A stretch of 64,000 nucleotides of DNA from Glycera tridactyla (Eukaryota): positions 89,652,001-89,716,000 of the forward strand of contig OZ286462.1 in the NCBI GenBank assembly GCA_965644265.1, in the 5' to 3' direction. Below the pieces are notes generated by a model. The model ran no database searches. It was given only the letters and a program-made list of their open reading frames with translations, and had not been told where the DNA came from. Below, in pieces: positions 25,030 through 36,278 of the stretch (positions within the stretch are counted from its first letter, which is position 1; every line of letters begins with the position of its first letter). The position numbers and the translations under genes are program-made.

Positions 25030-27624
25030 GTTGCCATGGCTTTGAACTCTTTCATTAGGACAATACATTGATACAAAATCATCTTTCCATTATGTTACCT
25101 AATCTTGCCAAACACTAAATACATCTAATACTGAATTTCTAACTTTTACAACATAGCAAACTGCATTAAAGACATGAGCCTGGTAATGGTTGAATTCAAC
25201 TCAACAGGACCATTGAAAATGGAGACATTTTCTCACATGTTTGGAATTGGCCTGATGATGCAATGGTCAAATTGCGAAAGCTGCATGCTTCAGCCAGGAT
25301 TAGTCAGTGAAGTGACTGGAGGTGGTCCTGAAAAATCAACGAGGGTAAAGTTTAAGTTGGACTTTGGTTTGTTTCTACACATTCATAGACTGAAGGAGAC
25401 TAACTCTGTCCTATCCAAATGTGATGGGTACCTCTCATGCAATATATTCATCAATTTTCATCTGATCTGACTTTAATGGCACAAATGATTGTGCATTCTG
25501 TAGGCCTATGAAAAGAATACGCTATCATTTTATTGCATTTATATGGCGAATCCGCTGGCATTATCGTCTGATCTTCCCTACTTGTAGACATGACTGCCAC
25601 ATGAGCAGTGAAAGCAGCGTGTAACTGACACATTTGGCGTTAAAGAGTGAAATATATGAAGGAACTTTGCCAAGATTGCATTTCAAGTCGCCGGAGATGT
25701 CAACGATGTCTGTCAATGAGTTTCATTTCAGTCCGATGCAAATTCGCGATGCTATGGTGAAAAACGTACCCGCCATGATTATACTTGACAGACTTCACCT
25801 GAGTTAGAAGTTAGTGGAATGAAGTGGGAAAACTACCGGTCGTGTTCAAACATTACGGGGAGCCATCTCAGCTTAGTAAACATCCCTCTCGTTTCATAGA
25901 GTAATGATATATGTGCCGTTGGTGATCGATATGTTTTACATTTCCACAAGCAGATACATGTTGGTAAACTTTGTCAATCAATCAATTGATCAATCATCCA
26001 ATATTCTGGAGACAGATTCGTGATAAGTTGTGGAACTTTCATGATACACCAAACGGCTCAAACACAAGTATGACTAGATAGTGAACTTGATCCCTGGGTG
26101 TCGGTCGCCAGGCATGGAAATTCCACAAAATATTGGATGATTTCTGGGAATGTAATTTGTACATTCCGATGGTGTATTGTGAAACATGGATTCATCCCCT
26201 CATGATATCTGTTTGATCATTATACAGTGCTTGCCGACTAGGGCATCAAGGGCCGCCTGTATGAGTGTCTTTCATGCTGCGTGCAACTAAAAGATCTACG
26301 GTATGCTGTAAATTTGTAAGGAGTAGGGCAAGTGCTCTATTCTTCAGACAACAGGTATTTTTTCATGAACAAGAATTGAAAAATACCAAGAATGAATACA
26401 AAAGTATGGATACCAAAAATATGTTCTCTTTGACATTCTTTTATCACTCCAATGTTTCACGGGACTATGTTTTATAACTGATCATATCTTCAGTCTTGAA
26501 TAATTCTGCCTGGATTGAAGAGACGTTAAGCTCTAGTCAATCAATCAATCAATCAATAGTTCAATCAATCAATCAATCTCATTGATGTTCAGTTTTCTGG
26601 TGGATGACTGGTCGGCAAGTAAGCCGTGTCGACAACTCTATTGTTCTCATAAATGGTTTCTTGATGGCGGTAAGTACACGTTGACATCTATTTATGGCGT
26701 GATATAAGAACTAATCGCAGCCACTCAGACTTGTATTATTAGGCATAATACTTGGATAATCAAGGCTGTAGTAGTGGCAGTCCACAGCACACACTCACCA
26801 GCCTGATAAATGGCCACCAACCATTGACAGCAGCTACAGTCTAATCTGATTTACATGCAACTACATCTCTCTCTTTCATTCATAAACAAACACTGTCTGC
26901 ATAACATGAAAGAGCCATGGGCATTATCTGTTCAGGGTTTGTGTGAGGGATGTCTGCAGGGGACAGGACATGTAGTTTGTATTGACTGGGAGCACACAGC
27001 ATATATTATCAGCTTGGTCGATACATGCTGTTAAACCACAAACAAACAAATTGATTGCCTTCAGTGTATATTTGTGTGTGGCTGTGTGTGTGTATCAGTG
27101 CATGTGCAATGAGAGAAATCCAGGAAGAGACTTCTTCCACAAGGCAGCTCTGATATTTGACTTATTTAAATATGCCTCCAACAAGAGACCACCCCTTTCT
27201 AAAGACAACTCTAAAGTGGTCTTTTTTTTCTGTCTCACAAGGAAGATTACTCAGTCACAGATGCTCTCACTGAAGACTTGAAATTTTGTTGTGATCTGGG
27301 AAATTTACCAAAAAAAGTGGTGTGACTGAAAACAGAAGAGACTATAGTGGGATTAATGTGAGACATAAATCTATGTATAATGTGTGTGATCAGGCTGTAG
27401 AACATGTACTACCATGACATGTACTCCCATATTCACACCTTGAGTCTGACTGTGAATTGCATGACATGTGCTCCCATATTGACACTTGGACACTGCTACA
27501 AGTTCACAGTGTTTTACATCCTTCCATAGTACATCTATGGCATTGTGCTTGCTCATATACTCACACAGATACTTGATACATATAACCTTTTTTCATATTA
27601 GAACACAAAATAAATGAACATGTC

Positions 27625-30600
27625 TTATTTTCCCATTTTATTTAGCCCATAGGGTACAAAGCTTCTGAGTTGGTATATCCAATTTCTCTCTCGTCTTCTT
27701 CTTTTCATGGTCGTGTCTTGGTCTTCATAACTGGGGATGGCCTCAAGTATGTAGGACTCAAAATCCTTTCTTTTTCGATGTTTCGTGTTGAAGTGAACTG
27801 CCACGGGCTTGTCTCGGTTGTGGCGGATGTCAGCGTCGTGTTCCTTATATCTCGTTGCGAATGCTCTCTTTGTTTCACCAACATATTGCATTTTGTGTTC
27901 TGGACAGTATAGTAAATATACAACATTGCTTGTTTGGCAATTCACAGTTTGTTTTAATATGTGTTGTTGATCTGTGTTAGGGCAGTGGAATGTTCTCCTT
28001 CTGCGTAGTTCATTGCAAATGTTGCAAGCTGGTTTTCTGCATTTAGCATCTGATATTTTCGGTGGTTCTCTTCTTTGGTTAGTCGGTGGGTATTCGACTT
28101 CTGCTCTGATCAGCATTTCTTTGATGTTTTTGCATCTTCTGTATGCCACTAGTGGTCTTGGGCCAACTAACTCCCTTGTGATTGGTGAGTTGCGTAGAAT
28201 GTGCCAGTTCTTTTTTAGTATTTTTGTCAAGTTTGGTATGCCCTGTCCATATGTCGTGACGAGGGGTAGTTTTTGTGCCTGTTCCTTCTTTCTTCTTTGT
28301 TGTAAAGGGTCCATTAAGGACTCTCTCGTTATCTTTTCAACCTTATTAAGTGAGTCTTGTAATTGTGTGGGGTTATACCCCTGTTTCTTGAAATGTTGTG
28401 TCATGTTTGAGCTGTGCGTGGAGAAATCTTCTTCCTTGGTGCATATTCGTCTGAGTCTTAAATATTGACTGAATGGGAGAGCACTTTTACAGTGGTCAGG
28501 GTGATGTGATTGTGCTGGTAGATAGTTATGTGAATCAGTTGGTTTACTATAGAGGTCTGTGTAGATTTCGTTTGTATGGGGGTCGATTTTGACCTTGGTG
28601 TCCAGAAAAATGATTTCTTCCTTGCCATTTTCTGCTGTGAATTTTATTGTTGTGTGGAAGTTGTTGCAATGTGCAATGAAATTGTCTAGATCAGAGACTG
28701 AGTGGTTCCATATCATGAATATGTCATCAATGTATCTCAAGAAGATATATGGTTGTTTGTTTGATTGAGCCAACATTTTTGTTTCCAAGTCTGCCATGAA
28801 GAGGCATGCATAGGTGGGGGCTACCTTGGTGCCCATGGCGGTGCCGCCTATTTGTAGGTAATGCTTGCCGTTGAATTCGAAATTGTTCTTATGTAGAACC
28901 ATTTCTAGTAGTTTTATTATTGTGTAGTTTGGGATGAGTAGTTTTTTATTTCTTATTATGTTTGAAATGGCTTTTAAGCCATCCCCGTTCGGAATGTTTG
29001 TGTAGAGTGAGGTGACGTCCATGGTCACCAGTATTGTATTCTCTGGAATATTCATATTGTGTATGATCTTCACAAATTCTGTGGTGTCTTTGACATATGA
29101 TTTTATTTTTGGTACAAATGGTTTTAGAATTTCATCCACGAAACTGGATATTCTCTCAGTTGGGCAGTTATTCCCACTAATGATTGGTCTCCCCGGTATG
29201 TTCTTCTTGTGTATTTTCGGGAGCAGGTAAAATCTTGCTGTTCTTGGTTCATATTTGGTTAAAGTTTGTGCCAGTTTGGCATCCAAGTAGCCTAATGCGA
29301 CTAGTTGCTCTATGTATTTTGTTATTTGGTCACCATGGTGGGTGGTAAGATCTTCTGTGACAGGAAGGTAGAAATTGTCATCTTGTAATTGGCGTTCTGC
29401 CTCTCGGATGTAGTCAGTGGTGTTCATGATTACCACTGCTCCTCCTTTATCTGCATTCTTAATCGTGATTTCTTTATTGTTAAAGAGATTGTTTATGGCC
29501 TCTCTTTGACAAGAAGGCATGTTTGATTTGTATGTGATGTTGTTCATGTTGTTTAGTATGTCATTTCTGCATGCTATTGTGAAAGCTTCTATGCATTCGT
29601 CGTTCAGGGGTGGTTCCCATGTACTTCTGATTTTAAAATTCTTTCTCAGTGCTCTGGTTATTTCTGAGGCGTCAGTGACTTCCTGTTCTTGGTCTCTAAA
29701 GAAAACTCTAAGTTTCATTTTCCTGATATATTCTTGGAAATCATCCATGATATCTACTATTTCTGATTGTCTGGGTGTAGGGCAAAACTTCAGTGTTCTA
29801 CTCAAAGCATTGATTTCTGTTTCTGATGGTTCATAATTCAAGATATTAACGACAGATCCGTCATTGTACGATTCAATATTTTTATTTGTTTGTAAGATAT
29901 TTACAGCTGCTGCGGGTGGTGGTTCTTCATCCACAATGTGGATTAACGGCGGTATCTGCGTTGTTTCATGGCCCGAATGAGGCTCAAGATGTCTTCTTCC
30001 GAATCTGTTCGGTTGTTTCTCCTGGGATTCCCCCATTGTTGGCTTCTCGGTTGGCCTCTGTTCAACGGGCGGGGGGGGTCTTCTCTCTCTCGCTTGCCCG
30101 GGTGCCTCTTCCAGGCGACTTCGTTTGGAATCGGGTGCATCCTTCGCTATGACTTCGGACAGGTATGTCAGGGTCTTCTGCTTCTGTTCTTCGGTTTCGA
30201 TCGTGGACAGCATGGCTTGTTTCTTCTCGGCGAGTCGGCCTTGTAAACTCTGTAATTCTCGGTTGGCTCTGTCTCCCAGAGATACCATGAGCTTTATGCT
30301 GAAATCTCTTCCCAGTCTTGTCCATTCTTCCATGAACTCTGGTTCATTCGCTCCAAAGGCTGGTTTGATGTGTACTTTTAGTCCTATCGGGATCGTATTC
30401 TTCTCAATGGAGTCTGTCAGGAAGTTCAAGTGGTTTGTCACTTTGGCCTCCCTGACTGCTAGTTTTCTCACCTCCCTGAAGAGAGGGAATGCGATGTCTG
30501 GAACGACTTTGTACTCAGAAGTCTCTCTCTTCCTCTTCTTGGATACTTGGAAGTTGGCATTGGATGCTGATCCTTGAACCACTGTGTTTACACTAACAGT

Positions 30601-30711
30601 GCTGCTACTGGCTGTCACTGTGTCTTGAACCACTCTGGTAGTGCTTGTAGAAGCTGCCAACTTCCAACGTGCTAGCTTGTCTGCCAGCTCATCACTGCCG
30701 ATTGTAGACAT
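27625..30711 (-). CDS. Penelope-like RT + C-terminal GIY-YIG endonuclease, 1028 aa from first ATG
   Basis: RT motifs FYLLPKIHK, PGRPIIS, MDVTSLYTNIP, GTAMGTKVAP, RYIDDIF. Cys-rich linker CRKPACNIC. Endonuclease NVVYLLYC...QYVGET...EH, and terminal WIYQLRSFVPYGLN typical of the Neptune group. The ORF-track start at 30846 is a TTG. Confidence 0.97.
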   Translation of the reverse strand: MSTIGSDELADKLARWKLAASTSTTRVVQDTVTASSSTVSVNTVVQGSASNANFQVSKKRKRETSEYKVVPDIAFPLFREVRKLAVREAKVTNHLNFLTDSIEKNTIPIGLKVHIKPAFGANEPEFMEEWTRLGRDFSIKLMVSLGDRANRELQSLQGRLAEKKQAMLSTIETEEQKQKTLTYLSEVIAKDAPDSKRSRLEEAPGQARERRPPPPVEQRPTEKPTMGESQEKQPNRFGRRHLEPHSGHETTQIPPLIHIVDEEPPPAAAVNILQTNKNIESYNDGSVVNILNYEPSETEINALSRTLKFCPTPRQSEIVDIMDDFQEYIRKMKLRVFFRDQEQEVTDASEITRALRKNFKIRSTWEPPLNDECIEAFTIACRNDILNNMNNITYKSNMPSCQREAINNLFNNKEITIKNADKGGAVVIMNTTDYIREAERQLQDDNFYLPVTEDLTTHHGDQITKYIEQLVALGYLDAKLAQTLTKYEPRTARFYLLPKIHKKNIPGRPIISGNNCPTERISSFVDEILKPFVPKIKSYVKDTTEFVKIIHNMNIPENTILVTMDVTSLYTNIPNGDGLKAISNIIRNKKLLIPNYTIIKLLEMVLHKNNFEFNGKHYLQIGGTAMGTKVAPTYACLFMADLETKMLAQSNKQPYIFLRYIDDIFMIWNHSVSDLDNFIAHCNNFHTTIKFTAENGKEEIIFLDTKVKIDPHTNEIYTDLYSKPTDSHNYLPAQSHHPDHCKSALPFSQYLRLRRICTKEEDFSTHSSNMTQHFKKQGYNPTQLQDSLNKVEKITRESLMDPLQQRRKKEQAQKLPLVTTYGQGIPNLTKILKKNWHILRNSPITRELVGPRPLVAYRRCKNIKEMLIRAEVEYPPTNQRREPPKISDAKCRKPACNICNELRRRRTFHCPNTDQQHILKQTVNCQTSNVVYLLYCPEHKMQYVGETKRAFATRYKEHDADIRHNRDKPVAVHFNTKHRKRKDFESYILEAIPSYEDQDTTMKRRRRERNWIYQLRSFVPYGLNKMGK

Positions 30712-30848
30712 TGAGGAGTCAGTATCGGTATCAAAAGCACTAAGGCAATAAAAGAATATATGTGGTTTGATACTGGTCCTGCAATGTGCTGATAATGTGG
30801 GGTGATGTCCCTTTGCAAATTGGGGTTTGACAATATGTCTAACCAAAT

Positions 30849-30887
30849 GTCTGACTAGTTTCGCTCGGTCGGAGCTTCATCAGAGAC
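30849..30887 (-). ncRNA. Minimal type I hammerhead ribozyme
   Basis: Minus-strand RNA GUCU-CUGAUGA-A-GCUC(CGACC)GAGC-GAAAC-UA-GUC|AGAC. It has the full catalytic core, 4-bp helices I and II, a palindromic minimal helix III (ACUAGU) and a GUC cleavage triplet (cut between 30853 and 30852). Confidence 0.9.
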
Positions 30888-30990
30888 TGAGCATTCTGAC
30901 TTGTGCACTCTCTTATATAGCCTGACTGTCTGTGGTTGCTACCTGGCTGTGATTGGCCATTGCTGGGTGTGTGCTTGGTTCTGATTGGCT
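30886..30990 (-). promoter_or_regulatory. Internal RNA polymerase II promoter of the Penelope RT ORF (CCAAT x2, TATA, Inr)
   Basis: Minus strand: AGCCAATCAG and GGCCAATCAC (ATTGG at 30984 and 30952, 32 bp apart), TATATAAG starting at 30919, and TCAGT with its A at 30888, 31 nt downstream of the TATA. Confidence 0.7.
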
Positions 30991-30997
30991 GACGGTG

Positions 30998-31264
30998 TGT
31001 CCGGTGTGTCCGGTTCTGTGTCCGGTGTGTCCGGTGGGTGTCCGGTGTGTCCGGTTTTTGTCCGGGGTGTCCGGATTTGTGTCCGGTGTGTCCGGTTTGG
31101 TGTCCGGTGTGTCCGGTTAAGCGGTGGTGTGTCCGGCAAGTGTCCGGTGTCCGGTGGTGTCCGGGAATGTCCGGGAGGTGTCCGGTTTGGTCTTTGTTTA
31201 CTCTAGTGTCCGGAATTTGGACCCTGAGTGTCCGGTATGTTTATGTTGTGTCCGGTGTGTCCGG
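30998..31264. repeat. Array of ~22 invariant TGTCCGG heptamers with variable spacers
   Basis: Counted by eye. Cores are mostly 7-12 nt apart, immediately upstream of the promoter. Confidence 0.92.
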
Positions 31265-31811
31265 CAATGTGTTATTTTCCGTTTGTTTGGTTATATATGT
31301 TCTCGTATGTACATATTGTTTATCCCATTGTTTTTGGGTATGTTGATAGGCTGCTTTGGCCATTGTGTTACATGTTATGTTTGTAATAATATGTTTTGTT
31401 ATGTATTGTTGTTCATATTTTTTTGGAAGGATGTCTTTGTTGGATTTATTATATGACGATGTTACATCAGCACTTTTGGGTGTTGTGGAAATGTTGATTG
31501 AGTTTGGGAAAAATTTCCCATGCCAATATACTGGTTTCGGATTATTCCTACTTGTTGGATGGTAATGGTTCTCTCACAGAATGGACTCTTACATTCTCAA
31601 TATGATGAGACTGTTTCCAGGAATGATGGTATGTATTTTTGAATTGCAGGGATTGTGGTAGTCCCACATTCTGTTGTCTCTCATTTTGGTGAACTTACCT
31701 TGTGTCAATGGCAGGCATATGGTGTATATTTTTGGTGGTAGACCAACACAAAAATATCTGATTTTTTCTTACCTTGTGGTGGTTTATGAGATGTGGTGTT
31801 GTGATGGTTGT

Positions 31812-32324
31812 CTAATCGCGTTGGCCATGCAGGATGCATTTAGGGAGTACCAGATGGTCCAGGCGGCGTATCGCCTCTCTGAGTGTCTTGGTTGTATGTG
31901 TTTTCAGTTTTTCAAAGTCTACATGTGGGGTTCCTTGGCCCTCCGCATATGTGGTTCCATTGTTGCTTACGAGATTGTCCTCTGGATTGATTATAAGGGT
32001 AGGTGTGTTGATGTGAAAATAATTCCTCTTTGTTTGGTAATGAGTGGTATTACTCGGTGTTGAGATAAAGCCCCTTTTGAGGGGTGATGTCAGGAGGGAG
32101 GCTGTTCCAGTTTTTGGTGGTGTGGCGGCTGTGGTGCTTATTTGGTGCTTTTTTAGGATATGTCTCTTGAGATCATCGCTGTTTCGGTATTGCTTGCTGC
32201 AAGTATTGCATGCAATCCTGCTTGTCCTGTGTATAATTCGGAAGTGTTTGTGGCAGCCACTTTTGCTTTTAAAGACCTTCCCACATTCGGGATAAGTGCA
32301 TGCATATACGTTCACTCCTTCCAT
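31812..32324 (-). CDS. 170-aa protein with two N-terminal C2H2 zinc fingers, located inside the Penelope element
   Basis: CTYPECGKVFKSKSGCHKHFRIIH and CNTCSKQYRNSDDLKRHILKKH match C-x2/4-C-x12-H-x4-H. ATG start with an upstream in-frame stop, uninterrupted ORF, same strand as RT. Confidence 0.85.
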   Translation of the reverse strand: MEGVNVYACTYPECGKVFKSKSGCHKHFRIIHRTSRIACNTCSKQYRNSDDLKRHILKKHQISTTAATPPKTGTASLLTSPLKRGFISTPSNTTHYQTKRNYFHINTPTLIINPEDNLVSNNGTTYAEGQGTPHVDFEKLKTHTTKTLREAIRRLDHLVLPKCILHGQRD

Positions 32325-32859
32325 CGGGAACTGGTGTGTTGTGTTTGTTTGTTTTTTGTTTACATCATCTCATGGTGATTTTTGGTTGTTGTTGGTTATT
32401 TGTTTGTTTGTTTATGACGTCACAGTGTGTCTGTGATGCGTGTCGTGGTTCTTATGTTGTCAGAGGGACCTCGTATCAGTTTGTTGACATGTTACCATGG
32501 TTGCGATTGTTGCGTCATAGGACCGGCAATTGTGATGTCATAGTTTATTGTTAGGCGCGCGTTTCCGCGTGTCGCGTTGTGTTTATGTTCCCGGCGTGTG
32601 TGCCTTGTGTCTGCCTTGACACAGAAGTGGATATATTTCATGTTTTGTAAGTGTTTACATGTGTTATATTGATTGATCCATGTGTCATAACGTTTGTATT
32701 TTGTGGTGTGTTCGTGGATACTTCCTGGATGTCTTTATTGCTCTTTTGGAAGCCAAAAACATCGGTGCAATGCATGTCAAATGAGGGGTGCCACATGGTC
32801 AGTGGATTGGTGCTGGGAAATTCTCAGATCATGTTCTCAAATGGCATATAGCCTCAATA

Positions 32860-32959
32860 GAACACAAAATAAATGAACATGTCTTATTTTCCCATTTTAT
32901 TTAGCCCATAGGGTACAAAGCTTCTGAGTTGGTATATCCAATTTCTCTCTCGTCTTCTT
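32860..32959 (-). repeat. 5' terminal redundancy (pseudo-LTR): copy of the last ~25 codons and short 3' tail of the Penelope ORF
   Basis: Identical to 27601-27700 (offset 5259 bp). Confidence 0.95.
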
Positions 32960-33100
32960 TTTTCATATTACATGAGCAATTTGAGTTGAGTATTTGCCCA
33001 CTCTGTGGACTTGGCCTGATGCCTTCCTTACATTTCCAGAATTTTGATGAGACTGATATATTCATCTTTACTTGGACTAATATCAACCGCCCATATGTCG

Positions 33101-33892
33101 GTACTCAGTGCATGCTGACTCAATACTCAGTGCATGCTGACTCTATACTCAGTACATACTGACTCAGTACTCGGTGCATGCTGACTCAGTACTCTGTGCA
33201 TGCTGACTCAGTACTCTGTGCATGCTGACTCAGTACTCGGTGCATGCTGACTCAGTACCCAGTGCATGCTGACTCAGTACTCGGTGCATGCTGACTCAGT
33301 ACTCGGTGCATGCTGACTCAGTACTCAGTGCATGCTGACTCAGTACTCGGTGCATGCTGACTCAGTACTCGGTGCATGCTGACTCAGTACTCGGTGCATG
33401 CTGACTCAGTACTCGGTGCATGCTGACTCAGTACTCGGTGCATGCTGATTCAGTACTCGGTGCATGCTGACTCAGTACTCAGTGCATGCTGACTCAGTGC
33501 TCAGTGCATACTGACCCAGTACTCAGTGCATGCTGACCCAGTACTCAGTGCATACTGACTCAGTACTCGGTGCGTGCTGACCCAGTACTCAGTGCATGCT
33601 TACCCAGTACTCAGTGCATACTGACTCAGTACTCAGTGCATACTGACTCAGTACTCAGTGCATGCTGACTCAGTACTCAGTGCATGCTGACTCAGTACTC
33701 AGTGCATGCTGAATTGATACTCAGTGCATGCTGACTCAGTACTCGGTGCATGCTGACCCAGTACTCAGTGCATACTGACTCAGTACTCAGTGCATGCTGA
33801 CCCAGTGCTCTGTGCATGCTGACCCAGTACTCGGTGCATGCTGACCCAGTACTCAGTGCATACTGACTCAGTACTCAGTGCATGCTGACTCA
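33101..33892 (+). repeat. 22-bp minisatellite, ~36 copies
   Basis: Unit CTCAGTACTC(A/G)GTGCATGCTGA with variants. Confidence 0.96.
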
Positions 33893-36278
33893 TATAGTGT
33901 ACCCTTCAGTGGAAGACTGCCAAGAAGCACAGAGATGATTATTCTCCCAACTCAGGTGGATTCTTGGAAGAGATATGTTTGGATATATCATTCAGTGGAA
34001 GCAATTATGAGAGAGAGACCCTCAACAAAAGACCATCACTGACAGAAGACTGCTTCCATGGCACAGCTGCCCTATCTGGCATAGTCAAATACACCACCTT
34101 TGAGATAAAACACTTTTTGGTGGCATTTAGGGCAGAAGTGGTCGCTCTAATTAGGTGGTCTGATAGAGGGATTGCACTACATTAGACAGGATGAAGGCCC
34201 TGGTGAGATCCGTGTAATGGCGCCAGGTCAAAGCTGCATGTAATTGGGGATTGGAAACATGGCCGAAGTCAGAGTGTATTTGAGGTGCTCCAGGATCCAT
34301 GACATTATTTCATGGAATCATCAGTAGCCAATAATTCCTACAGGGGTCACAGGACATACACTGATCAATCAAAGGACTTTTTTTCAACCCAATATTTTAC
34401 ACAATCTACATCGTTCACATGTGATGATCCTATCATCATGTGTTCAGGGTTCGTGGAAGTGATGCCTGTAGGTTAGTTTCTAGCTTCTATAGACCAGGAA
34501 CACATGGGATACAACCTATCGAGTTCTCCATATAATCTTGTTGTAAGGGTTTGTGAAAGTGAAGATTGCTTGGGACAGACCACTCAGCATGATGATAAGC
34601 ACTGTGCTAGTCATTCTCCTGATAAAATAATACATCTTAGAGAATGTAAGGGATCTGTTCCCAATGAATAATCTTATTTATTCTGAGTCAACATAAGATC
34701 TTTTGGTGTCTTCTTCATGTGGCATTCAGAACTGATAAATCTATTTGCTCGAGAGGATATGGGAGAATAAGTCAATTTCCGTGAGTTTGACTTGGTGGGA
34801 TGACCGTAATTATGCGGTAAATGTAAATTATTGATTTGAATGGCGACATGTTGTCAGGACAAACTGTATTTACAGCAAAACCTGCAACAAGAGATGCCTC
34901 AATGCGAGACCACATCTGACGGACCCCTCTTCTTTCATGGACGGACGGTTGCCCCTGGAAGGATGCTTTCTTTTTTGACATAATCAAATATACCAGATGA
35001 GAGACCACCTCTTGTGAAAGACTAACTTTAGGGCATCCTCTAGCTACAGGTTTCACTTTATGTTCTCAGCTCAAAAATGTCTTTGTAAACAGGTGGACGT
35101 TATAGAGAGGAAGTTAATGGTAGGAAGTGATATCTAGGTCATTGCTCATTGGGTTGGAGATGCAGTAAGTGTTCAGTTGGAGATACACTATTTCTAAAGT
35201 TGGTAGCCAGTTTGGTTTGGATTGGTTGAGATCTAACGGCATGGTGATGCCGAGGATTTTGTGTACCATGTGTATATGTAGGAGAGAGGTGATTAGAAGT
35301 TACCACAGAAAACTATGATGCTGAATGCAAAAGTTTGAGCGATCTTGGTGAATGGACACCGGGAGGTTATATCTAAGAGATGCAAACAAAAACCCGACCT
35401 TGGGAGTGCTAACAAAGGTTTTTTGCAATCAGTGATCAAAGAGAGTATGTGTTGTGATCATCTGATTGGTAGAATGGCATGCGGCAAAGATCATTTTCAG
35501 TTTAATGAGTGTTTGGTTTGTAGCCTTGCATGTTTGCTGAGATGATCAGGTGCGATCAAGAAACGTGGTTGATGAGCGTCAACGGTCACGTTTGCGGGCG
35601 CTGTCTTGTATATGCACCTTACACCTTGCCTGTTGACACAACACCCAGGTTGGGTTGGCGACGCTTCTCCTTCACGCCCCAACTCACCTCGGCCATTGAG
35701 AAACACATTTGCAGAAAGTGAGTTGTGAAAGAAAACATGGGATTAGGACCGTTGAAATGCTGCACAATTTTCTTCTCGCGAGCACACGATTTTCTTGCAA
35801 GCACACATGAAGCGTTGAGGTATTCATTAGGTGTATTTAGTAGTTGTGTACTGCATGTCTGGATGGGAACTCTCCCTCCCCTCTCCCCAATCCTCATTAC
35901 CTCACCTTGTGTGTACTATGCTTATTATGGCTTTCTGATATTTCTGCCTATATGCATGTTGGCAGTAATAAACACCGCCCAATATCACACTATCTAATAA
36001 GACTGCAAATATTCAGGTGATGCTCACATTCTGCAAAACAATTGTGAGTTTTCTTCAAGCTATGATGTATGATGTACACAGTAGTGTGTATGGAGTGACA
36101 GCTGTTTTTATCGGACATCTGTTTCACCCCATTTGTGTAGAGTATGTGATTGTGATGTTTAGTGGGTGAAGTCTTACTCTAACCCATTCTGTCCAGTTCA
36201 AATCATACCGAACTTCTACCCTCATGTGTGTAGGCTCTGTGATGGGGACAGTCAGAGGGAGAGAGGTATCATCAAGTA

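Follow-up and report, generated by a model that had tools for sequence, protein, structure and literature searches.

A two-finger C2H2 gene as a probable accessory gene of a Neptune-like Penelope-like element in Glycera tridactyla

Whether a small zinc-finger gene that resides within a retroelement belongs to that element or merely travels with it is the question raised by a 64,000-nucleotide stretch of the genome of Glycera tridactyla (assembly GCA_965644265.1, contig OZ286462.1, positions 89,652,001 to 89,716,000), which is referred to as the window and provides all coordinates given below without a locus name. It contains a Penelope-like element (PLE) inserted on the minus strand (27601..32956), whose large open reading frame (ORF; 27625..30846) encodes a reverse transcriptase (RT) together with an endonuclease (EN) of the GIY-YIG type. 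A second, ATG-initiated ORF of 170 aa with two C2H2 zinc fingers (ZF) is located at 31812..32324. We consider it highly probable that this ZF ORF is an integral, selected accessory gene encoded by a Neptune-like, endonuclease-bearing (EN+) PLE lineage. It is assigned to the element because purifying selection acts on it and because elements of other genomes that are only distantly related contain it as well. An earlier note on this DNA had proposed a two-gene PLE family, and this proposal is borne out: the ZF ORF is open in nearly all copies, its variants exhibit a synonymous skew, and its homologues are linked to related RT/GIY-YIG genes elsewhere.

The zinc-finger gene and its copies

The insertion comprises 5,356 bp, namely one unit of 5,259 bp, which starts at 32856 along the element strand, and about 100 nt left from a tandem copy upstream of it that is truncated at its 5' end; tandem arrays elsewhere in the genome repeat every 5,268 nt or so, in line with this unit length. 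Its downstream end at 27601 (...TGTGTTCTA) is designated site A. The flanks carry an exact 14-mer target-site duplication (TSD), CTTTTTTCATATTA in plus-strand letters, with the downstream copy at 27587..27600 and the upstream copy at 32957..32970; the 14-mer has just these two exact matches in the whole window, where 0.01 would be expected by chance. The earlier note had placed the ZF ORF inside this duplication, on the strand of the RT/GIY-YIG ORF and with the same compositional bias, and each of these features was recovered: both ORFs are on the minus strand, and a strand bias (AT skew -0.21 to -0.55), with far more A than T on the element strand, spans the entire insertion and ends at both of its borders. 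The terminal repeats that the note described around the ZF ORF also exist as a pair, a direct repeat of 106 nt (27599-27704 and 32858-32963; 99% identity, spacing 5,259 nt), but their nature is a different one. The upstream member is a pseudo-long terminal repeat (pseudo-LTR; 32858..32956, minus strand), i.e. a 3'-terminal stretch of about 100 nt contributed by the truncated tandem copy upstream; this stretch consists of the end of the RT/EN ORF and the 3' untranslated region, encodes the same C-terminal EN peptide, and represents the usual PLE layout.

The two fingers of the ZF protein occupy aa 7-60 (C9-x4-C14-x12-H27-x4-H32 and C39-x2-C42-x12-H55-x4-H60) and are followed by a linker that varies, after which the C-terminal region (aa ~78-170) is again conserved. 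Both fingers are intact and are joined by the motif RTSRIA between H32 and C39, in agreement with the earlier reading. Pfam recognises zf-C2H2 in two stretches (27.7 bits; cut-off 25.2), and the AlphaFold2 model shows the succession strand-strand-helix twice, with a predicted local distance difference test (pLDDT) score of 82-90 over aa 11-60. Confidence in this model is limited to the fingers (mean pLDDT 62, tail mostly <50), and an ESM Atlas search with the C-terminal region gave no usable match.

The PLE family is young and abundant, with copies that are 94-100% identical. The ZF-bearing region of 2,011 nt was retrieved with full coverage and within this range of identity from at least 42 places on many contigs, including tandem arrays, and a 24-mer from the ZF ORF has 180 genomic matches at up to two mismatches. 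Six-frame searches with the ZF protein resulted in 150 scored places, drawn from 1,428 first-look candidates, and 147 of them lack an internal stop. The ZF region is thus not unique to one insertion. A total of 38 full-length copies of the ORF from 20 independent loci, all of them ungapped and open, represent 24 distinct haplotypes (copies >=96.5% identical), and they differ at 58 variants, which were classified with the commonest base per site as the codon context. Of these variants, 34 are synonymous and 24 non-synonymous; with a ratio of non-synonymous to synonymous sites of 3.47, this corresponds to a dN/dS (omega) of about 0.2-0.3, to be read as an upper bound. If the same mutation spectrum is placed randomly in the ORF, 18.2 synonymous and 38 non-synonymous changes are expected, together with 1.8 that create a stop; the synonymous excess is significant (binomial p=1.7e-5). 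It is seen in the finger part as well as in the tail, and variants shared by at least two loci show it too (20 synonymous, 10 non-synonymous). The three codon positions carry 8, 14 and 36 variants, respectively, and only 9 and 16 variants would count as synonymous if they were read in the other two frames. The dN/dS ratio across copies is hence not near 1, the value at which, according to the earlier note, the gene would lose its standing as part of the element.

The surroundings of the ORF provide a complementary picture. Nucleotide diversity (pi) among copies amounts to 0.0236 in the ZF ORF, 0.0237 in the region upstream of it (32860-32325), and 0.0495 in the following non-coding spacer (31291..31811, minus strand), which is the most variable part of the module. 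The block with the promoter and the hammerhead ribozyme (HHR) shows a pi of 0.0107. A single gapped alignment column is found in the ZF ORF versus 8-48 in the neighbouring segments.

These data bear directly on the alternative that the ZF ORF is a functionless passenger, either a once-captured host C2H2 sequence or a chance frame on a T-poor strand. The A/C-rich element strand is indeed poor in the T that forms stop codons, which makes long chance ORFs easier, and with copies as young as these openness by itself is weak evidence. Nevertheless, we regard a passenger as extremely improbable: the synonymous and third-position excess is confined to the ZF frame, the 38 copies are free of indels in an ORF whose neighbouring segments carry them, and homologues with 28-52% identity are still open and still located beside PLE RT genes where the flanking non-coding DNA is no longer alignable. 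A one-off transduction and a chance ORF were both rejected on the grounds of cross-lineage conservation, copy number and the frame-specific synonymous bias.

Relatives in other assemblies and the class of the element

A word-indexed protein search with the ZF ORF detected no homologue, and a metagenome scan with the single ZF protein found no match. An exhaustive HMMER search identified five proteins that align beyond generic fingers (P0044, P0048, P0045, P0068, P0190) with 28-52% identity, including P0044 (E 1e-34, 44% identity over aa 1-169) and P0048 (37%). Conservation comprises both fingers and the C-terminal region (roughly SPL-RGFI ... LIIN-EDNLP ... QGTP-ADF ... TLREAI-KLE ... LPKC), and the linker between them is variable.

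The genomic context of the relatives links the gene to PLEs. In the ENA assembly contig L067, about 1 kb separates the ZF ORF from a ACCGGACAC array; beyond this array there are two CCAAT boxes, then a TATA box and a hammerhead, and finally an RT whose N-terminus is 46% identical to that of the window. Two NCBI assemblies (L068, L069) and one ENA assembly (L071) harbor the ZF ORF, a 250-aa ORF and a 772-aa RT/GIY-YIG ORF on one strand, with an RT that is 55% identical to the window's; these elements also contain a TCCACCGGACC motif array, two CCAAT boxes, a TATA box and a hammerhead. The ZF gene precedes the RT gene in L068, and in L069 and L071 the RT gene is followed after about 500 nt by the first ATG of the ZF frame. 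Both orders are expected from tandem units. In a third NCBI assembly (L070), the last codons of the EN ORF (...YGLNTMGK) are followed by about 440 nt with a cAMP response element (CRE) and then by the ZF ORF. The closest relative, L061 with 58% identity, is located on a contig that ends short of the expected ZF position.

Three PLE relatives with about 40% RT identity (L062-L064) have no C2H2 ORF nearby, and in L062 the hammerhead is located only about 250 nt after the RT stop, without an ACCGGAC array. Since these relatives lack the ORF and the compact L062 lacks the array, the ZF gene and the array look as if they had been inserted into the terminal region in a single PLE sub-lineage and retained there since.

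The RT/GIY-YIG ORF itself is an open frame of 1073 aa on the minus strand, or 1028 aa from its first ATG at 30711, and consists of an N-terminal coiled-coil-like region, the RT, a CX5CxxC linker and the GIY-YIG domain. Its Pfam matches are RVT_1 (38.2 bits) and, at aa 975-1062, GIY-YIG (30.6 bits), which documents a C-terminal fusion of the endonuclease, and the RT contains the DKG motif as NADKGGAVV. Its best homologues, turtle and shark PLE-like proteins among them, carry DUF8422, RVT_1, HTH_animal and GIY-YIG. The GIY-YIG region reads C-QTSNVVYLLY-C-PEH-KMQYVGET and contains cysteines and histidines that are candidates for the CCHH motif (two cysteines between GIY and YIG). Upstream of this domain, CRKPACNIC fits the linker criterion for Neptune given in PMC8557442, a motif that also occurs in Nematis. 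The element therefore appears to be a Neptune-like EN+ PLE, with its clade suggested by the linker motif. It has in common with canonical EN+ PLEs of the Neptune clade (Arkhipova 2006; PMC8557442) the DKG-type RT, the C-terminal GIY-YIG domain and the Zn-finger-like CX2-5CxxC linker, and moreover a pseudo-LTR derived from a partial tandem copy, inverted 5'-truncated neighbours, a variable TSD, the lack of poly(A), a putative minimal hammerhead motif and tandem as well as inverted, head-to-head arrays. It departs from the single-ORF organization of canonical EN+ PLEs by the second conserved ORF at 31812-32324.

Further observations concern the RT/EN ORF. The N-terminal region and the RT/EN part are fused in one 1073-aa frame in the window family; in the 55%-identical relatives, a separate 250-aa N-terminal ORF overlaps the 772-aa RT/EN ORF by 4 nt (L068:2638-5705, L069:309-3376, L071:648-3715). 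An AATAAA hexamer (27637-27642, minus strand) is located inside the end of the RT/EN ORF, 36 nt ahead of the site-A terminus, and the copies are without poly(A).

Several points weigh against the interpretation of the ZF ORF as an integral and novel gene of the element. Assembled contigs of sequencing runs, none of which is certainly RNA, gave no proof of its transcription or translation. Many of the variants, perhaps most, arose after insertion, which makes omega an upper bound. A 24-mer marker of the RT has 374 places, compared with 180 for the ZF marker, and long tandem arrays in head-to-head orientation that repeat every 2,329 nt or so (e.g. G000 C1:122509699-122543571, C7:81508634-81546196, C1:35813584-35818259) contain the junction of site A with the 5' end and lack both the ZF and the RT 24-mer. 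The surplus of RT markers and the 2.33-kb arrays without both genes indicate that the ZF gene is not needed in cis for every amplified copy. Finally, the architecture may already be catalogued in Repbase or Dfam: no C2H2 gene described in any PLE was revealed by full-text literature searches, which did not extend to these databases. The 2,329-nt arrays are probably non-autonomous derivatives, perhaps retrozyme-like ones. Another derivative, a 2,622-nt deletion form in a tandem array (L004, L005, L007; G000 C26:77732629-77742894), joins 30343 to 27708 in window numbering; on C26 its ZF ORF is intact, and the promoter, the HHR and the initial ~500 nt of the RT frame (30846-30343) have been retained, without the RT and EN domains.

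Array, promoter block and a possible regulatory role

What the ZF protein may do for the element is suggested by the organization of the unit. On the element strand, its order starts with the RT/EN stop, followed by about 0.45-0.6 kb with a CRE (TGACGTCA), the ZF ORF and a spacer of about 0.5-1 kb; it then continues with an ACCGGAC array, two CCAAT boxes and a TATA box, a minimal hammerhead motif, and an RT/EN ORF, which belongs either to the same tandem unit or to the next one. The CRE palindrome (32415..32422, minus strand) is located 98 nt upstream of the ZF ATG and represents a candidate promoter element of the ZF gene. Counted from the ZF ATG, a full CRE is present 98-266 nt upstream in the window, L065, L067 and L068/L069, and one can be recognised by eye in L070 (4-5 lineages), at a chance rate of about 0.005 per 300 nt for an 8-mer palindrome. 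The ZF gene would thus be transcribed as a separate unit from the region with the CRE, because this TATA-less upstream region is as constrained as the ORF and because ZF-only insertions end at an alternative terminus described below (site B). In the assembled contigs mentioned above, none of which is certainly RNA, no joint of the GT..AG type was seen. A spliced ZF-RT fusion was rejected since the ZF ORF has its own conserved stop and no such joint was found.

The array in the window (30999..31264, minus strand) is composed of 22 CCGGAC(AC) motifs that are mostly 9-12 nt apart. Equivalents with 8-22 ACCGGAC motifs are located directly upstream of the CCAAT/TATA block in L067:1787-1875, L068:2108-2350 and L071:118-360, where the motifs of L068 are about 20 nt apart. 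Each of the three ZF-bearing lineages in which the region is visible possesses an array, and the ZF-less L062 has none. Their core has been kept although the ZF proteins share only 28-52% identity and the proteins of these elements about 30-55%. At the contact positions of finger 2, the window and L067, which share the motif CCGGACAC, have N,D,D,R; the L068 type, with the motif CCACCGGACC, has H,D,T,R. Adjacent to the array, the promoter-like block (30913..30988, minus strand) contains two CCAAT boxes (30988-30984, 30956-30952) and a TATATAA (30919-30913); it has the lowest pi among the copies and aligns with L067 and L068, and its TATA box is invariant.

A minimal hammerhead ribozyme motif follows at 30849..30890 (minus strand), with CUGAUGA, helix II, GAAA and a palindromic CUAG loop, and a predicted cut after C30853. 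Its core is invariant in three lineages (L067:1994-2035, L068:2462-2503), the palindromic loop is CUAG or CCGG, and helix II is maintained by compensatory changes (GCUC/GAGC, GCCC/GGGC, GACC/GGUC). An Rfam search at E<1 over 27000-33500 reported neither a ribozyme nor any other RNA family and missed this motif, and the motif folded as a monomer was no better than shuffled sequences. Minimal PLE hammerheads are said to act as dimers; the monomer result fits this behaviour and proves nothing. As the hammerhead is positioned about 25 nt downstream of the TATA box, RNA initiated at this promoter may not include helix I's 5' strand.

Our leading, if tentative, explanation is that the ZF protein may act as a DNA-binding regulator on the ACCGGAC array of its own element. 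The two fingers would bind the array sequence-specifically and thereby tune the adjacent CCAAT/TATA promoter of the RT gene, so that the element would encode its own transcription factor and also carry the cis array on which this factor acts. This model is compatible with a 7-bp core that suits two fingers, with the co-occurrence of array and gene, with the conservation of the core, and with finger-2 residues that differ together with the motif. A complete regulatory circuit, in which a two-finger factor expressed from the CRE promoter would be combined with a co-evolving array of 8 to 22 ACCGGAC binding sites upstream of the RT promoter/ribozyme block, is somewhat more doubtful. Two points speak against the proposed mechanism. 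For these fingers, roughly GCA-GNN would be expected from the canonical C2H2 recognition code, which does not match ACCGGAC, and the link between array and ZF gene is derived from three lineages and one clean negative.

Insertion ends, rival roles and known systems

The family uses a second downstream terminus besides site A. At site B (30753, minus strand), where many other family insertions end, the element terminates with ...ACCACATATATTCT followed by flank; the end reads ...ACATATATTCT, lies about 100 nt after the hammerhead and is joined to unrelated flanks at at least 13 loci (two-end loci L002, L003, L008, L023, L028, L029, L036, L037, L039, L055, L056, L059, L060). Both sites finish in TTCT(A). 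Site A has 532 exact occurrences, 466 of which continue into the module and 66 of which do not; among the 68 exact occurrences of site B, 40 continue into the RT ORF and 28 do not. In public contigs, site B coincides with a loose contig end and with an inverted joint. The ZF gene without the RT is contained in insertions of 2.1-2.3 kb that terminate at this site. In the window insertion, the ZF module is located upstream of the RT ORF; in site-B insertions, it lies downstream of an RT ORF fragment that is truncated at its 5' side. In published PLEs, the HHR resides within the pseudo-LTRs, near the 3' end (PMC8557442). This convention and the comparison with L062 would assign the ZF gene to the 3'/pseudo-LTR region downstream of RT/EN; both ends, however, are clearly used.

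The site-B insertions are also relevant for the alternative that the ZF protein is a cofactor of the ORF1p/Gag type, i.e. a chaperone or part of a ribonucleoprotein, which binds element RNA or the cDNA/target junction during target-primed reverse transcription. That ZF-only insertions of 2.1-2.3 kb end at site B implies that the RT uses the ZF-coding RNA itself as a template, the conserved C-terminal region of ~90 aa suggests a role beyond DNA reading, and accessory nucleic-acid-binding ORFs are common in retrotransposons, such as the upstream zf-CCHC ORF of Chlamys-2_cBra and ORF1 of Athena (PMC8557442). Yet tandem C2H2 fingers with near-canonical spacing are mostly DNA readers, Pfam detects no RNA-binding domain in the ZF protein, and such a cofactor would leave the co-conserved ACCGGAC array without a role. 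We consider this alternative rather unlikely; it ranks second, after regulation through the array.

Element-encoded nucleic-acid-binding modules that aid target-primed reverse transcription or target recognition are known from other retroelements, namely the ORF1 proteins of non-LTR (non-long-terminal-repeat) elements and the N-terminal C2H2 fingers of R2, which guide the choice of the target. R2 represents a different class of retroelement, and its fingers are part of the RT polyprotein, in contrast to the separate gene with a separate putative promoter found here. A role of the ZF protein as a targeting or integration cofactor, or a host-directed one such as countering host silencing, which the earlier note had suggested, would provide the benefit to the element that is implied by selection on the ORF. 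Against targeting, the insertion flanks are heterogeneous (GATA/TAGA microsatellites, unique DNA) and share no target motif resembling a 6-7-bp ZF site. Roles of this kind appear unlikely, and binding to the element's own array is preferred to them. With respect to the insertion sites, a tandem repeat with a period of 22 nt and more than 34 copies (32966-33990) begins directly beside the upstream TSD and hence positions the element at the edge of a minisatellite. Other copies of the family adjoin GATA/TAGA microsatellites.

Canonical EN+ PLEs have been described as single-ORF elements (Craig et al. 2021, PMC8557442). The statement of the earlier note that PLEs are normally of this kind is valid for the canonical EN+ representatives and does not extend to other clades, where the ORF1 of Athena and the zf-CCHC ORF of Chlamys-2_cBra are documented. 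Because extra ORFs are already known, the novelty consists in the C2H2 gene and not in a second ORF as such. Unlike canonical EN+ PLEs, the lineage studied here has a unit of 5.26 kb and possesses a separate C2H2 gene for 170-270 aa, a CRE-containing upstream region and the ACCGGAC array between the RT/EN stop and the promoter/HHR.

The known multi-ORF PLEs resemble this organization to different degrees. Chlamys-2_cBra from Chara braunii has an upstream ORF for a gag-like zf-CCHC peptide (PMC8557442) and is thus likewise a PLE with an extra small ORF for a zinc-binding, nucleic-acid-binding peptide. However, it belongs to another clade (N-terminal EN, green lineage) and encodes a CCHC knuckle instead of tandem C2H2 fingers; the comparison is one by description, and no sequence relationship is expected. 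In EN-minus PLEs (Athena), ORF1, a coiled-coil N-terminal ORF, has been split off by a frameshift (PMC8557442). These are multi-ORF PLEs as well, and L068, L069 and L071 also have the N-terminal region split off as a 250-aa ORF, but ORF1 of Athena is the N-terminal coiled-coil part of the RT polyprotein, and the ZF gene is additional to such an ORF. The Fundulus Neptune element repeat.CL27 has two long ORFs, too, with an 'ORF1' of 420 nt that lacks database similarity and is located 170 nt upstream of the RT ORF (PMC12602865, 2025). By description, its difference is that no zinc finger has been reported; this ORF1 most likely corresponds to the N-terminal region and not to the ZF gene.

Taken together, the ZF ORF is a well-supported accessory gene with a testable regulatory hypothesis, which is of interest to transposon biologists. 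Canonical EN+ PLEs are handled as single-gene elements by the literature and by annotation pipelines, and the automated gene sets of these genomes will contain hundreds of 'orphan' two-finger C2H2 genes that are transposon genes. To our knowledge, PLEs are the least understood major class of retrotransposons, with a transposition cycle, promoter use and RNA processing that are largely unknown. A conserved and selected second gene, whose protein is of a DNA-binding type, and its fixed surroundings, comprising the CRE, the ZF gene, the array, the promoter and the ribozyme, provide a handle on how PLEs control or assist their own expression and mobility.

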